Sequence record: NC_042060.1
Length of the DNA: 64,000 nucleotides
Strand: one strand, 5' to 3'
Part shown: positions 43,461 through 50,236 of the stretch, piece after piece
Layout of the letters: each line of letters opens with the position of its first letter
Numbering within the stretch: position 1 is the first letter of the stretch
Notes under the pieces: generated by a model
What the model saw: only the letters and a program-made list of their open reading frames with translations
Told to the model about the DNA's origin: nothing
Database searches by the model: none
Program-made: the position numbers and the translations under genes

Positions 43461-43628
43461 TTAGAATATACCTTTTATTAATTGGACAAATAGATTAGAT
43501 ACACATAGCAATAGAATAAACCATAAACCTAGTCTTTGTAATTTATCTATACGCTTAGCTTTTTGTTTCCTCTTTAATCTAACTAATAATGTATTTTTAA
43601 TATCATTCATTAAATTATCTCAGATTTT

Positions 43629-44159
43629 TTAGACGGTGTATAAACCCTCAGTATTACATGTTGTTATGATATTGTAAAGACGATGCCAATAGCGATCATA
43701 CGTATTTTTACGTTTGTAGCTATTGGTACGGATGACTAGATTGGCGACCCAGTGATTCTGATCAATGGTCTCATGTAGATGCCCGAAATAAGCCCCCAGT
43801 TCAATTTCGAATGGGATCTTACACTCACGCCCCTTACACATTGCTTCACGCAATAAACGCATTGCAGAATTCTCTGCATTGGTATCTTTAAATAAAAGAC
43901 TAATGTATCCAGGGCTACCACCAGTTTCTTCATCAACATGGCCTGAACAGCAATAAATAGTTGCAACATTGGTAAATTGATTAAACCATTTAATTAATGG
44001 CCTACATGCTTCATCAATAAGATCTTCATATTCAGGTTTATACATTACTTTAACAGTATCATCTGCACGTTGTTTCACATGATGAAAATATTGCTCCCAA
44101 TTTACATTAGTGTAATATAGCATATCCATATTAGAATTACTCATACAAATCAACCCCAT
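43629..44159 (-). CDS. TYW3/Taw3-like motif protein
   Basis: IDEACRPLIKWFNQFTNVATIYCCSGH resembles TYW3 IDxxIxxLxxxINxxxxxxTxSSCSGR; alternative start 44144. Confidence 0.6.
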   Translation of the reverse strand: MGLICMSNSNMDMLYYTNVNWEQYFHHVKQRADDTVKVMYKPEYEDLIDEACRPLIKWFNQFTNVATIYCCSGHVDEETGGSPGYISLLFKDTNAENSAMRLLREAMCKGRECKIPFEIELGAYFGHLHETIDQNHWVANLVIRTNSYKRKNTYDRYWHRLYNIITTCNTEGLYTV

Positions 44160-44881
44160 ATGTTATTGGCATATTCGCGGTCATTGAAAATGCGGGTAAG
44201 ATCCATCCGCTTTTGAATGCGCGCTAGTATCCATTTTAGTTGTTTAGTTGATAGTTCTTGATTTTGCTTGTACTCACCTGTAGCATGGATGTAATAATCA
44301 AATTTACGACTTACAGTAGTAGTATGTGCACATGCAATAGCAAATGCTTCAAGTGCAGTTAGTTTGGTTGATCCATTATCATTACAATTAGGGATAAACT
44401 CAAGTACACTATTAACTGCATCTACACCACTACCCAAATGAGCCCAATCTTTCTTGGTGATGTTGATACCCATGTCTTTAAGAATAACTGTATATATGTC
44501 ACCATTCTCCATAGTGAACATCATAGAAGTATTACCATTAAACAACCTGCGTTCTATGACTGGCAAGATATTTACTTCAACTTTAAACCAATCAGCTAAA
44601 TCAACACCTGCGGTAAGGGCATTCAATAGATCATAAACATTATCTATAGTTCCAGCAAAAGCCATAGTTTTAACACGTTTACCTTGCCAAGTAACTGTCG
44701 GATGAAAAATTATCTTGTGGCAATCATTGTAATATACATCTACACCTTCAGCTTTAGCAGTTAGATCAATATAACCGTTATCTAATACTGGAAGTCGCCC
44801 AATGCTATCAGTTGCATTATTCCGCTCAATTAATAGGCAGTCTGCAATCATGACTTTACCATCATTTACGATATATGTCAT
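44150..44881 (-). CDS. HslV/proteasome-beta-like N-terminal-Thr hydrolase
   Basis: GGAG RBS places the start at ATG 44881, giving M-TYIVNDGKVMIAD; CHK, MAFAG, HLGSG motifs. Confidence 0.7.
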   Translation of the reverse strand: MTYIVNDGKVMIADCLLIERNNATDSIGRLPVLDNGYIDLTAKAEGVDVYYNDCHKIIFHPTVTWQGKRVKTMAFAGTIDNVYDLLNALTAGVDLADWFKVEVNILPVIERRLFNGNTSMMFTMENGDIYTVILKDMGINITKKDWAHLGSGVDAVNSVLEFIPNCNDNGSTKLTALEAFAIACAHTTTVSRKFDYYIHATGEYKQNQELSTKQLKWILARIQKRMDLTRIFNDREYANNIWG

Positions 44882-44916
44882 TTTCACTCCTTATAATAAA
44901 ATAAATAGGCTTAAGC

Positions 44917-44944
44917 GAAATAAAGCCCTCCCCGAAGGGAGGGC
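44917..44944 (-). terminator. intrinsic terminator
   Basis: gccctccc-UUCG-gggagggc then TTTATTTC. Confidence 0.88.
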
Positions 44945-45042
44945 ATTATCAATAGGTGGGATCTCGGCGGCACCTTCATTTGCGGACGGGAACGCTGAAG
45001 GGAGATAGTCCGGGAGATCCCGATTTGGGTATTCTTTACATA
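44917..45042 (-). ncRNA. candidate structured small RNA
   Basis: TATGTA at 45042, nested stems gggatctc/gagatccc and ccttca/tgaagg, then a terminator. Confidence 0.4.
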
Positions 45043-45047
45043 TGGTA

Positions 45048-45428
45048 TTACTGCAAGTATTTGTTCCCCGCAGTATAATCACCATTGATCCAATTTTTGA
45101 TTACAACACTGATCCCTTCATTTTCTTTAACGGTAACCCCCAACTCAAGATCGATTGATTGATAAGCTACAGCCGCCAGTGTTAACCGAAGATAAACGGA
45201 TCCATCTTTTTCGATATCGTAGGATACTACGAACCCGTCTTGTAGATTTTGTAGCTGGAATGTATTAGCATGTTGTGGGTGGAGACGATCCATATTGTAC
45301 TCGACGACATCTAGTAGATATTGCCGAGCATCAGCAGCATTATCAAATCCGAGATCGCACAGACCGATCGGATAGCGAGCTTGCGTGCATGTAACTTTCA
45401 TAGATACTACACGATGTTGTTTGCACAT
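45048..45428 (-). CDS. hypothetical protein
   Basis: 126 aa, GAGGA RBS. Confidence 0.75.
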   Translation of the reverse strand: MCKQHRVVSMKVTCTQARYPIGLCDLGFDNAADARQYLLDVVEYNMDRLHPQHANTFQLQNLQDGFVVSYDIEKDGSVYLRLTLAAVAYQSIDLELGVTVKENEGISVVIKNWINGDYTAGNKYLQ

Positions 45429-45453
45429 TATATTTTCCTCTTAGATGTCAAAA

Positions 45454-45476
45454 ACCCTCCCCGATCAGGGGAGGGT
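45454..45476 (-). terminator. intrinsic terminator
   Basis: accctcccc / ggggagggt stem then TTTT. Confidence 0.8.
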
Positions 45477-45569
45477 ATCTCATTGGTACTTCTTCAGCAA
45501 AACTGAAACTAAGATAAAAGAGCAATCGTAAAGGAACTACATAGAATAGTGTATTTCTTTTACTATTTT

Positions 45570-45983
45570 TTACACAACCTCTTTAGATGGGGGTTCTTTA
45601 TGAATCCAGTCTAAAGTTGTTGGTAAACTATTATCTGATCTGAAGGTACACACCGTCCGGAACCGAGAGTGATCAACTACAGATAATTGCCCGTTAATCG
45701 CAGCCTCATATTGCCTACACAACTTCACACACCTTTTCTCTAGATCAGTTGGTTCGTAACCTTCTTCTCTTGGTTCAGTGTATGGTCCATCCCAAAAGAA
45801 TATTAATCTAAGATCAATCCCAGATTTATACTCCGCTTGGTATGAATATTGATGAACATCAAAATCATCTAATTCTTCAACTAGATGTGATGTTATTGTT
45901 CTAGGGTGTTCATGAGTTAATTCACTGTATATATGTTTATTTCTAGGGTTTTGTAAATCAACTACGATAAGTTGACTAGTCAT
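45570..45983 (-). CDS. hypothetical protein
   Basis: ATG 45983 directly after the upstream stop; track start overlaps the neighbour. Confidence 0.7.
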   Translation of the reverse strand: MTSQLIVVDLQNPRNKHIYSELTHEHPRTITSHLVEELDDFDVHQYSYQAEYKSGIDLRLIFFWDGPYTEPREEGYEPTDLEKRCVKLCRQYEAAINGQLSVVDHSRFRTVCTFRSDNSLPTTLDWIHKEPPSKEVV

Positions 45984-45984
45984 T

Positions 45985-46638
45985 TTAACTTTTATCCAGA
46001 TGTCTATTACGAGTGCGTTCCACTGCTGTAGGTTCGACAGTGGCTCGCGGTAGATAAGTAATCTCCGGGAAAGTCTTATTAAGAGCATCTTCAATTAGCT
46101 CTTTAGCAATCTCTGCATCGATGTAATGGTTTAGAATAATACCACGATGATACAGGAAGAAGCTGTATTCATCATAACCATGGCGAAGACTTACTTTACC
46201 ACGATACCCACCATAGGTTAGAGTATCTTCGTTAATTTCATTCCGATAAATATCAAGTTGGATATTATTTTGAAGATGCATTTGAATGAAGTCATTACCA
46301 TCGCCACCAAATAGGGTTGGTCGTTTCCGCCCGGTAACAACATCTTGGATGGAATCCATTAGTCGGTTAATGTCTGTTTCTAATCGTTGGATATCACATT
46401 GAGAATTCATTGCTTCATGAAAACGAGTTACAACTGCATTAAATTCTTCTTCAGTCCAACCGCTGGTACGTTTTTCATAATCAACAATGATAATACCGAA
46501 CCAGGCATAACCGTTAGAATGTTTTACTTTAACACATAGATGAGGTACATTATCAGCACCTGACTGATGGTTAACAGTGTAATTATTATTACGGCTGATT
46601 ACTAGTTTGATAAAAGGTAGACTAATGATTGACGCCAT
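45985..46638 (-). CDS. hypothetical protein
   Basis: 217 aa, AAGGA RBS. Confidence 0.8.
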   Translation of the reverse strand: MASIISLPFIKLVISRNNNYTVNHQSGADNVPHLCVKVKHSNGYAWFGIIIVDYEKRTSGWTEEEFNAVVTRFHEAMNSQCDIQRLETDINRLMDSIQDVVTGRKRPTLFGGDGNDFIQMHLQNNIQLDIYRNEINEDTLTYGGYRGKVSLRHGYDEYSFFLYHRGIILNHYIDAEIAKELIEDALNKTFPEITYLPRATVEPTAVERTRNRHLDKS

Positions 46639-46998: not shown

Positions 46999-48525
46999 TT
47001 AATATTTCAATAGACTATTGATAAAAGCATTAGGGTCATAACGGTTATTTGAAAAAGCCGCCATTACATCACACCCTGGCTGATCTTTAAATCTGATATC
47101 TTCAGGAATATCGAAGTCAGGGAACATTAGTTTAATATACTCCCTAACCTCTTGATCTCGTAGATATGGAATCTCCACCATGTAATCAACGCGACCTTTC
47201 CTTAGAAGTGCTTTATCAATATTCTCAGGATGGTTTGTAGTTAGAATGGTCATTGTCTCATCTAGTGGAACAATGCCATCTAGACCATTTAATAAAGCTG
47301 ACAAAGTTAATCCGCTAGCCGGTTGTTCATACGTAATTCCATTCTTCATACACTTCTTTAATTTCCACCATCGGCGAATTGTGGTAAATAATGGATCTTT
47401 CTCATCGGCCCATTTTGAAACACCCAATTCAGCCATAGCGTAAGCACTTATCCCAAAACCTTGATCATCGCTATTTTCATCAAAGATATAGATGGTGTCA
47501 TTAAATCCAACTACAGAGTATCCTTCATAGTCATCTTTAAGATCAACCCATGCAGATGGATATTTCTCAATTAAATCAATAAAAGAATATTTCCTCTCTA
47601 ATTCTTTTATCTCTTTATCTAGTTTTACAGGATCATTTAAAACGCGATCTTTAACTGCCGGGGTATCATCGAAGTCCTCAATTAAAAGAATATTACCTTT
47701 AGGTAGTGTAGTAAATGCCCGCCTAAGACTATCATTAGTCATAGAGGCTAGTGATAGCGCACTAACATTTTTATTAAAATGTGAGGCAATTGCTTTACTG
47801 ATCGAGGTTTTACCAGTACCAGGAGGACCTGTTAAAACACAAGTGAATTTATAGGGTAGTCCACGATCATCGTACCATTTCCGATCAGAATAGAATTCTT
47901 CAATCTTATTAAGGAATTCTTCTTTGATCTCTTTACGCAAAATCACCGTGTTGATATCGCGTTTAGTAACTTCAATCTCATTGCCCCAACGGTTACCATC
48001 CCAATGTGAAATAGTCAGACCCCTTTCATTTGGGCGCCAATGGTAAGCATCTACTAAATCAATAATTAGTTTACTACTCCTAGATAATCCACGGATAGTA
48101 ATATCCATTTGATCTCGACTGGCATTTTGACTATCCCGGCGTGCTTTTACAAACCAGAATAACCTACCTTTAAACAGAAAGAAATGTAAGCCAAAACCAA
48201 CACCAATTTTCTGTTTAGTTGCACTATAACTTTGCTCATCAACATTAGTTGAAAAACGTCGATTAAATCCAGCTAATGGCTGCTTAATATACCATTCCAT
48301 GAAACAATCAAAGTTCTTCTCGTTCAGCCCATTACCCATGTTGGTAATATGTAGACTAACTGTAAACTGATTTAATGCGAACCTAGCTAGTTTACTTGGT
48401 AAGCCTCTTAGAGTGGTCCAGAATAAACCACCAATTGCCATTCCGATAGCTCCACCCATAACCATATTCTTCTGAGAGATATCGATGAACATGGCGTAAT
48501 ATTGCAATAAGGTTTCTATAATCAT
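46999..48525 (-). CDS. BCS1-like membrane-anchored AAA+ ATPase
   Basis: N-terminal TM; KRDINTVIL..WYDDRGLPYK; GPPGTGKT; ILLIEDFD; SGLTLSALLNGLDG; TTNHPENIDKALLRKGRVD. Confidence 0.88.
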   Translation of the reverse strand: MIIETLLQYYAMFIDISQKNMVMGGAIGMAIGGLFWTTLRGLPSKLARFALNQFTVSLHITNMGNGLNEKNFDCFMEWYIKQPLAGFNRRFSTNVDEQSYSATKQKIGVGFGLHFFLFKGRLFWFVKARRDSQNASRDQMDITIRGLSRSSKLIIDLVDAYHWRPNERGLTISHWDGNRWGNEIEVTKRDINTVILRKEIKEEFLNKIEEFYSDRKWYDDRGLPYKFTCVLTGPPGTGKTSISKAIASHFNKNVSALSLASMTNDSLRRAFTTLPKGNILLIEDFDDTPAVKDRVLNDPVKLDKEIKELERKYSFIDLIEKYPSAWVDLKDDYEGYSVVGFNDTIYIFDENSDDQGFGISAYAMAELGVSKWADEKDPLFTTIRRWWKLKKCMKNGITYEQPASGLTLSALLNGLDGIVPLDETMTILTTNHPENIDKALLRKGRVDYMVEIPYLRDQEVREYIKLMFPDFDIPEDIRFKDQPGCDVMAAFSNNRYDPNAFINSLLKY

Positions 48526-49363: not shown

Positions 49364-50236
49364 TTAGATTTTTACAGACCAGTGTTGCTCGAATTCCTGA
49401 TATAGGAAATTGTCGGATGCGTTATCCCAATTTTCTCGATCGGTTACACCATAATAATGGAATTCTAGTTCAGTAGGTCCACCAACAAAACCATTCTTAG
49501 CATAGCTATAAACTTTGCCATTGGTTAGCTTAATAAGTACATCCACATAGAAACTATTACGGTTCCATATTTCATTGTGGATGTACTTAAATACCACACT
49601 GTGGATGTACTTAAATTGCGCACTTGGTTTTCCGAGTACACTATAATAGAATTTACGGATACCTATTTCGGTCTTGAAATTAAACTCACCGTTGCGAATG
49701 TTGTTAGAAACAATACGTGTTAGTTTATTAACCCGATTTTCTTCACCGAGTAGATAGATCCCGGAAACACTACATCCATCTCCTATTGATCCATTATTAA
49801 CTAGTGGATCAACACCATATTCATCAGTGAAAATGGTTTTGATAACCTCTTTACCTTCTCGACGCACCAACATATTCAGATGACCATCTTCGATATATGA
49901 CATATGGCTAGGCTGAATATATTCACTTGTATCGACGATAACATCATTCGCCATTATATTAAACAGTAGATGGTTTACCAGATCACTAATACCTTTAAAA
50001 CGAATGGCTTGGTTCGCTGTATTTAGATCGACATACACCACGACATCAATAATGCCTTGTTTTAGTGATTTGTCATCTTTGTCAGTAGTTGTATCAATTT
50101 TTACGTAATTTTGATATAGTTCACTAAAACAAGATATGATGTCATCATGTAGTTTAATTACATCAGATCCATTTCGTTCAAGCGCTTTAAGCGATACGTT
50201 AAAACCAATACGAATTTTATTAGAACGACGTGCCAT
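49364..50236 (-). CDS. hypothetical protein, paralogue of 48522-49307
   Basis: 290 aa, AGGTG RBS. Confidence 0.8.
   Translation of the reverse strand: MARRSNKIRIGFNVSLKALERNGSDVIKLHDDIISCFSELYQNYVKIDTTTDKDDKSLKQGIIDVVVYVDLNTANQAIRFKGISDLVNHLLFNIMANDVIVDTSEYIQPSHMSYIEDGHLNMLVRREGKEVIKTIFTDEYGVDPLVNNGSIGDGCSVSGIYLLGEENRVNKLTRIVSNNIRNGEFNFKTEIGIRKFYYSVLGKPSAQFKYIHSVVFKYIHNEIWNRNSFYVDVLIKLTNGKVYSYAKNGFVGGPTELEFHYYGVTDRENWDNASDNFLYQEFEQHWSVKI

Follow-up and report, generated by a model that had tools for sequence, protein, structure and literature searches.

A probable N-terminal-threonine peptidase of the proteasome beta/Anbu/HslV family encoded by the phiKZ-type jumbo phage PA7

What does a gene that is listed as "hypothetical protein" or similar in the available records of the phages that carry it encode, and could the product be an enzyme? 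The gene lies in the first 64 kb of the genome of PA7, a jumbo phage of the phiKZ type that infects Pseudomonas, and this stretch of 64,000 nucleotides (record NC_042060.1, coordinates the same as in JX233784) is referred to here as the window. The coding sequence is at 44153-44881 on the minus strand (stop codon 44150-44152), specifies 243 amino acids (aa) and is the orthologue of PHIKZ289 (phiKZ gp289) and of Churi gp011. The PA7 protein shares 98.8% identity with PHIKZ289, which is named only in supplementary tables, and not in the main text, of the literature found; it is 100% identical in many phiKZ-like phages, and the gene is present in 51 phage genomes, all from Pseudomonas phages. An original prediction, made from the window alone, proposed a protease resembling HslV and the proteasome beta subunit, with an intact N-terminal threonine. 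The analysis reported here favours, at a probability of about 0.7, a catalytically competent N-terminal-threonine peptidase of the proteasome beta/Anbu/HslV family.

The position of the start codon is critical, as the predicted nucleophile directly follows the initiating methionine. ATG 44881 is preceded by the Shine-Dalgarno sequence AAGGAG (44887-44892, minus strand) with a 5-nt spacer, in agreement with the ribosome binding site originally proposed, and translation from this codon gives a protein beginning Met-Thr-Tyr-Ile-Val. The PA7 GenBank record (AFO70867.1) instead uses GTG 44887 (44885-44887), adding Met-Lys ahead of Met-Thr for a total of 245 aa. As judged from the sequence, this start is probably wrong, because the GTG codon sits within the Shine-Dalgarno sequence, and the 732-nt ATG form is the one annotated in Churi and, in the gene table of a transposon insertion sequencing (TnSeq) study, the one listed for phiKZ. 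The GTG start would conceal the N-terminal nucleophile from readers of the annotation.

The PA7 protein almost certainly has the proteasome-family N-terminal nucleophile (Ntn) fold, an alpha-beta-beta-alpha arrangement with the S1-S10 core and helices H1-H4, bearing out the Ntn fold that had been proposed. An AlphaFold model built from a 42-sequence alignment has a predicted local distance difference test score (pLDDT) of 93.7 and a predicted template modelling score (pTM) of 0.87. With an earlier model from six sequences (pLDDT 71, with the insertion described below unmodelled), a Foldseek search of the PDB had already recovered proteasome-family chains only (best E 2.7e-6), and the top 500-1000 Foldseek and VIA matches were all proteasome-family chains, with Z up to 14.2. 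A second structural aligner, independent of Foldseek, was run over 48,161 PDB representative chains and placed beta subunits, Anbu, HslV and BPH at the top of the ranking. In this run the 20S beta subunits scored Z 12.2-13.4 and Anbu Z 12.5; over all comparisons the ranges were Z 12.2-14.2 for the 20S beta subunits (root-mean-square deviation 3-4 Å over 160-180 residues) and Z 12.5-13.9 for Anbu, with 181-188 residues aligned, the longest span of any match, extending to model residue ~237. Lower scores were obtained for HslV of T. maritima (Z 11.4), BPH (Z 10.5-11.2), alpha subunits (Z 8.6-10.4), connectase (Z 7.9-8.3) and other Ntn hydrolases, namely acid ceramidase, bile-salt hydrolase and penicillin acylases (Z no greater than 7.8). 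For beta subunits, HslV, BPH, connectase and the acylases, the nucleophile (residue 1) was superposed on model residue 2. In a viral structure library, the same fold was found in many phage proteins, for example from Noxifer and RisingSun, and annotated examples include those of Moabite (as "ATP-dependent protease subunit") and CcrBL9 (as "proteasome subunit beta").

Conservation was assessed in an alignment of 42 full or near-full members of the family, in which the mean column identity is 28%. The protein begins Met-Thr in 38 of the 42, one of which has a 7-residue upstream extension that is probably a miscalled start, and Met-Ser in two, the remaining two being truncated gene calls. The claim of an N-terminal threonine holds, with Thr2 (codon 44876-44878; this and all codons below are on the minus strand) predicted to become Thr1, the nucleophile, once the methionine is removed. 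In the model, strands at residues 3-6, 10-14 and 17-22 are followed by the insertion that had been noticed after the first strands, here placed at residues ~23-55 (44717-44815), which adds ~30 residues of a length that varies in the family and ends just ahead of Lys56. Asp14 (codon 44840-44842), at the end of strand S2, is taken as the equivalent of Asp17 from its order and position in the fold. Lys56 (codon 44714-44716) in the CHK motif is taken as Lys33, and Gly77 (codon 44651-44653) in the MAFAG motif, at the end of the strand formed by residues 68-77, as the oxyanion-hole Gly47. The CHK and MAFAG motifs had been matched to these same two regions in the original prediction, and all three residues are invariant (42/42). 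The remaining match that it made, of HLGSG (Gly150-Ser151-Gly152, codons 44426-44434) to the Ser129 region, stands only in part: this is the region of proteasome Gly128-Ser129-Gly130 and Gly150 is found in all 42 members, but residue 151 is Ser in only 20. Asp195 (codon 44297-44299), which, like Asp14, lies beyond the motifs recognized originally, is also found in 42/42; it is in an F-D-Y-Y motif after helix H4 and is, by position only, a possible Asp166 counterpart. The helices in the model are H1 (82-90), H2 (95-103), H3 (153-160), H4 (176-186) and a C-terminal helix from residue 212 to 225 or beyond; the C-terminal helix region (residues 212-243, 44153-44248, minus strand) holds the motif that, catalytic residues aside, is best conserved in the family, and resembles H5 of beta subunits and Anbu. 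Thr/Ser2, Asp14, Lys56 and Gly77 are kept at ~20% identity and this pattern, therefore, points to selection for catalysis. On the sequence evidence, the PA7 protein is likely to be an active peptidase.

By sequence, the PA7 protein is assigned to PHROG 25842 (function unknown), and PHROG 1040, labelled "peptidase HslV family", matches it weakly (E 5e-5). The PHROG 1040 profile also matches 18 of the 42 family members (best E 3.6e-9), detects control genomes that contain HslV or a proteasome, and in PA7 picks out only the peptidase gene. A word-based search recovered six relatives, one labelled as an HslVU peptidase subunit by JGI, and an exhaustive profile search of 1.84 billion representatives matched just 42 clusters (E ≤1e-3); the family is therefore small. 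When hhalign was used against E. coli HslV, either alone or as a shallow enterobacterial profile, the probability was 51-52%, and the FAG and GSG segments were placed on FAGG and GSGG, respectively, of HslV. The profile performed no better than the single HslV because the scan of genome contigs from which it was made yielded only HslVs that were at least 85% identical to one another.

The PA7 protein was compared with the nearest of the known proteasome-type systems. Its best structural match is the 20S beta subunit (MEROPS T1, PF00227), with which it shares the order Thr1, Asp, Lys, Gly, the helix pairs H1-H4 and a C-terminal helix. However, the PA7 protein has no propeptide, no alpha-type partner and ~30 extra residues between S3 and S4, and the two share only ~12-17% identity. 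Anbu (PDB 5nyg, 5nyw, 5lox and 5loy) also has the direct Met-Thr start, and its long C-terminal helix may correspond to the conserved one of the PA7 protein, but the two differ in the S3/S4 insertion, and identity is only 11-16%. The domains encoded by the operon partners of Anbu (ATP-grasp, transglutaminase-like and alpha-E) were not found among the Pfam domains of the neighbouring genes, which fall into PHROGs without an assigned function. An Anbu is also present in P. aeruginosa, the host species (PDB 5lox, title). HslV (ClpQ), like the PA7 protein, begins Met-Thr and has no propeptide, the two proteins can be aligned at their FAG and GSG segments, and the HslV-type PHROG 1040 is the only annotated family reached from the PA7 protein by sequence. 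In contrast, the PA7 protein is 243 aa long rather than ~175, includes the insertion and an H5-like helix, both of which HslV lacks (PMC8665760), and no HslU gene was detectable in the phage. The PA7 protein is thus not HslV proper, because no HslU was detected and because of the insertion and the H5-like helix, and the model places it at least as close by fold to the 20S beta subunit and Anbu as to HslV. The resemblance to HslV and proteasome beta that was first proposed survives in the Ntn fold, the invariant Asp, Lys and Gly and the PHROG 1040 matches. Among proteins of tailed phages, PPH (proteasome homologue of phages and their hosts) and AAH are also proteasome-like Ntn proteins without propeptides (PMC8665760). 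However, the phage-borne PPH are ~140 aa long and lack helix H2, whereas members of the HslV-like group I have a compact form with neither insertions nor H5 (Fuchs, Alva and Lupas 2021, PMC8665760), and by these descriptions the PA7 family is set apart from both by H1-H4, the insertion and the C-terminal helix, the PA7 protein itself having 243 aa.

The steps by which such a protein would act can be proposed. Host methionine aminopeptidase would remove Met1, with no need for a propeptide, and Thr1, through its free amino group and its hydroxyl and aided by Lys56 and Asp14, would attack the peptide bond, with Gly77 providing the oxyanion hole. As in the closest structural relatives, identical subunits would probably assemble, either into stacked rings or in the manner of Anbu, and in such an assembly the conserved C-terminal helix may make the H5-type contact between subunits; H5 is a contact that stabilizes the double beta layer and, in Anbu, forms a coiled coil (PMC8665760). 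The S3/S4 insertion, which is variable and lies beside the active site, may shape or restrict access of substrates. The odds lean slightly towards a ring-type oligomer.

The available data on infected cells bear on both assembly and the need for the protein. PHIKZ289 was found in infected cells by size-exclusion chromatography with mass spectrometry (SEC-MS) with 3 SEC peaks (PMC10449902, source data), and the authors of that study used the number of peaks as a proxy for assembly states (PMC10449902). The peptidase gene is also covered by contigs assembled from four RNA libraries, which come from four studies. Two TnSeq tables list 12 and 28 different sites of transposon insertion in PHIKZ289 (PMC12676376, supplement), and the gene is within the large non-essential region orf184-orf304 (PMC12676376).

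Several observations weigh against a catalytically competent peptidase of this family or limit what can be concluded. Pfam PF00227 (Proteasome) matched neither the PA7 protein nor the 42 homologues nor anything in a six-frame search of the genome, no other Pfam model and no NCBIfam model matched the PA7 protein or any of the 42 homologues, and searches of the PDB by sequence, using either the single protein or a 6-sequence profile, returned nothing relevant, only chance matches to CheA (E >0.3). The Ser129 counterpart is not conserved, with Cys in eight and Ala in six members at position 151. Residues were equated by their order, their invariance and the ranges of whole-chain superpositions rather than by a residue-level structural alignment, and catalytic competence is predicted from the pattern of conservation. 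The 3 SEC peaks of PHIKZ289 come from a single replicate row in the part of the source file that was covered, the RNA contigs give neither strand nor expression level, and the 15-minute proteome tables that include the neighbours of Churi gp011 do not include gp011 itself (PMC11849849).

Three other explanations were considered. AAA+ rings are established gates of HslV and of 20S cores, and the original prediction pointed to such partners. That the phage protein is a core of the HslV type in need of an AAA+ unfoldase, either a hijacked host HslU or ClpX or a Bcs1-like AAA protein of the phage, is, however, unlikely. An AAA_2 domain of the HslU/ClpX type was not detectable in PA7, though the same search detected it in 14 of 14 control genomes, and no homologue of the HslU-like gp116 of phage RAY was found in PA7. 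A gene for a Bcs1-like AAA protein (BCS1_N and AAA domains; window 46999-48525, minus strand) lies 2.1 kb upstream of the peptidase gene on the same strand, and the two genes are also no more than 5 kb apart in the metagenomic phages L006 (1-530) and L009 (1955-3538, with a different gene order). However, the Bcs1-like AAA is found in 156 phage records versus 51 for the peptidase gene, PhiPA3 has the AAA but no match in the peptidase search, the two genes are ~40 kb apart in Psa21 and D6, and the AAA is missing from the peptidase neighbourhoods of L007 and L008. As neither distribution nor synteny supports it, the Bcs1-like AAA was rejected as a dedicated partner, and an AAA+ gate is not supported. 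Moreover, BPH and Anbu function without a known unfoldase (PMC8665760). In support of this explanation, the related chimallivirus RAY, which infects Erwinia, encodes both an HslV-like and an HslU-like protein. An "HslVU-family" protein of RAY that localizes to the phage nucleus was reported by Prichard et al. (bioRxiv 10.1101/2023.02.24.529968), and we find that this is the HslU-like gp116 (L096 2353-4062). It was rejected as a nuclear HslV-like protein, since it is an HslU-like ATPase and the HslV-like gene of RAY is gp56 (L095 2562-3110). The gp56 gene is unannotated, matches PHROG 1040 (E 1e-9) and no Pfam model, and is 36 kb from gp116; the two might be a phage HslVU pair. Further matches to the classical AAA domain (PF00004) are present in the PA7 genome outside the window, at 91831-92187 (minus strand) and 96253-96561 (plus strand), in open reading frames (ORFs) of 383 and 716 aa, respectively.

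The second explanation, which we consider more doubtful still, is that the protein is a sequence-specific Ntn peptidase or transpeptidase resembling connectase (PDB 6zw0 and 8jtu), active as a monomer or dimer and without a degradation chamber, in which the insertion lies over the active site and selects one or a few substrates. Both proteins belong to the Thr/Ser1 Ntn superfamily and carry an insertion beside the active site between S3 and S4, which is the position of the signature element that confers substrate specificity on connectase (PMC8665760). The lack of a dedicated unfoldase linked to the gene and the small, phage-confined family would also fit. However, the Z scores for connectase (7.9-8.3) are far below those for beta subunits, Anbu, HslV and BPH (10.5-14), connectase is a monomeric archaeal ligase that lacks the H1 and H2 helices present in the PA7 model, and the H5-like helix and the 3 SEC peaks suggest assemblies. 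The third, a catalytically dead, alpha-like proteasome-fold scaffold or decoy that might, for example, bind and block a host unfoldase, is very improbable, for although phages often carry inactive mimics and Ser151 is not conserved, the catalytic set of Thr/Ser2, Asp14, Lys56 and Gly77 is retained despite the low overall identity and alpha subunits match worse than the active beta subunits.

The genes around that for the putative peptidase are in part conserved with it. The order p217-p137-...-peptidase-small ORF is common to PA7, Psa21, D6, Viktualia and metagenomic phages. The upstream genes for proteins of 217 aa (45985-46638, minus strand) and 137 aa (45570-45983, minus strand), both of unknown function, keep their synteny with the peptidase gene in distantly related phages, and the 217-aa protein is more conserved (39-52% identity) than the peptidase. 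The small ORF, which corresponds to PHIKZ290.1 (43461-43610, minus strand), encodes 49 aa, basic at the N-terminus and with a hydrophobic stretch towards the C-terminus, and has no PHROG match. Using tblastn, a PHIKZ290.1-like ORF was found directly after the peptidase gene in Psa21, D6 and L007, and look-alike ORFs of 42-46 aa are at the same place in L006 and Viktualia; the positions of the small ORF elsewhere are 6729-6872 in L002, 5732-5881 in L005, 6706-6846 in L007, 6719-6859 in L003 and 5714-5842 in L006. In PA7, one gene intervenes. This is PHIKZ290 (171 aa, window 43629-44144, minus strand), which starts a few bases past the peptidase stop codon, has a below-threshold match to Pfam TYW3 (E 0.0015) at a C-C-S-G-H motif and a match to PHROG 7413, and takes many transposon insertions in phiKZ. 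For a 290-aa protein encoded elsewhere in the window (49364-50236, minus strand), the N-terminal domain of SidC gave a weak match that did not reach the threshold (E 1.8e-4). PADLOC gave no match for the peptidase gene or its neighbours.

From its position, we infer that the PHIKZ290.1 product is a possible associated factor of the peptidase. A far more elaborate arrangement, which we rate as a long shot, would have the peptidase, a tail-anchored PHIKZ290.1 and the membrane-anchored Bcs1-like AAA forming one phage-built, membrane-associated AAA-plus-Ntn protease, with a logic like that of FtsH though made of unrelated parts, that remodels proteins of the host envelope or of the early-infection vesicle.

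The region immediately upstream of the peptidase gene includes the terminator hairpin of the preceding gene (44925-44944, minus strand), which forms the 5' boundary of the peptidase gene, and a poly(A)-tailed end at ~44917 was seen in a Nanopore complementary DNA (cDNA) run. Further poly(A)-tailed ends in these data are at ~44953 and ~45451. Many short cDNA contigs with very high word depth are found at 44919-45040 and ~45426-45500, and the first of these pile-ups lies between the stop codon of the upstream gene (45048) and its terminator. It could represent a stable fragment of the 3' untranslated region or the terminator, or a small RNA. The early-promoter word TATATTAC was not enriched in the window and was not found upstream of the peptidase gene.

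If the product is indeed an N-terminal-threonine peptidase, its likeliest role is to cleave proteins of the host or the phage in particular hosts or under particular conditions, because the gene is accessory and dispensable for growth on PAO1. The suggestion made in the original prediction, that the protease acts against host defence proteins, is speculation, though it fits with dispensability in the laboratory.

Proteasome homologues of phages have been catalogued before and one automated annotation had already called a homologue HslV. What is new is a clade without a curated model and with a distinct architecture, made up of the S3/S4 insertion and the H5-like helix, in a model phage. This adds a structurally distinct clade, for which there is no Pfam model, to the virus-borne proteasome homologues. 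phiKZ serves as the model for jumbo phages that form a nucleus, and an assigned function is lacking for most of its ~370 genes. A small, soluble, non-essential gene product thereby gains an enzymatic prediction, namely a threonine protease on which inhibitors of the proteasome type should act. PHIKZ289 mutants with transposon insertions exist and, therefore, the hypothesis can be tested directly, for example through host-range or anti-defence phenotypes.

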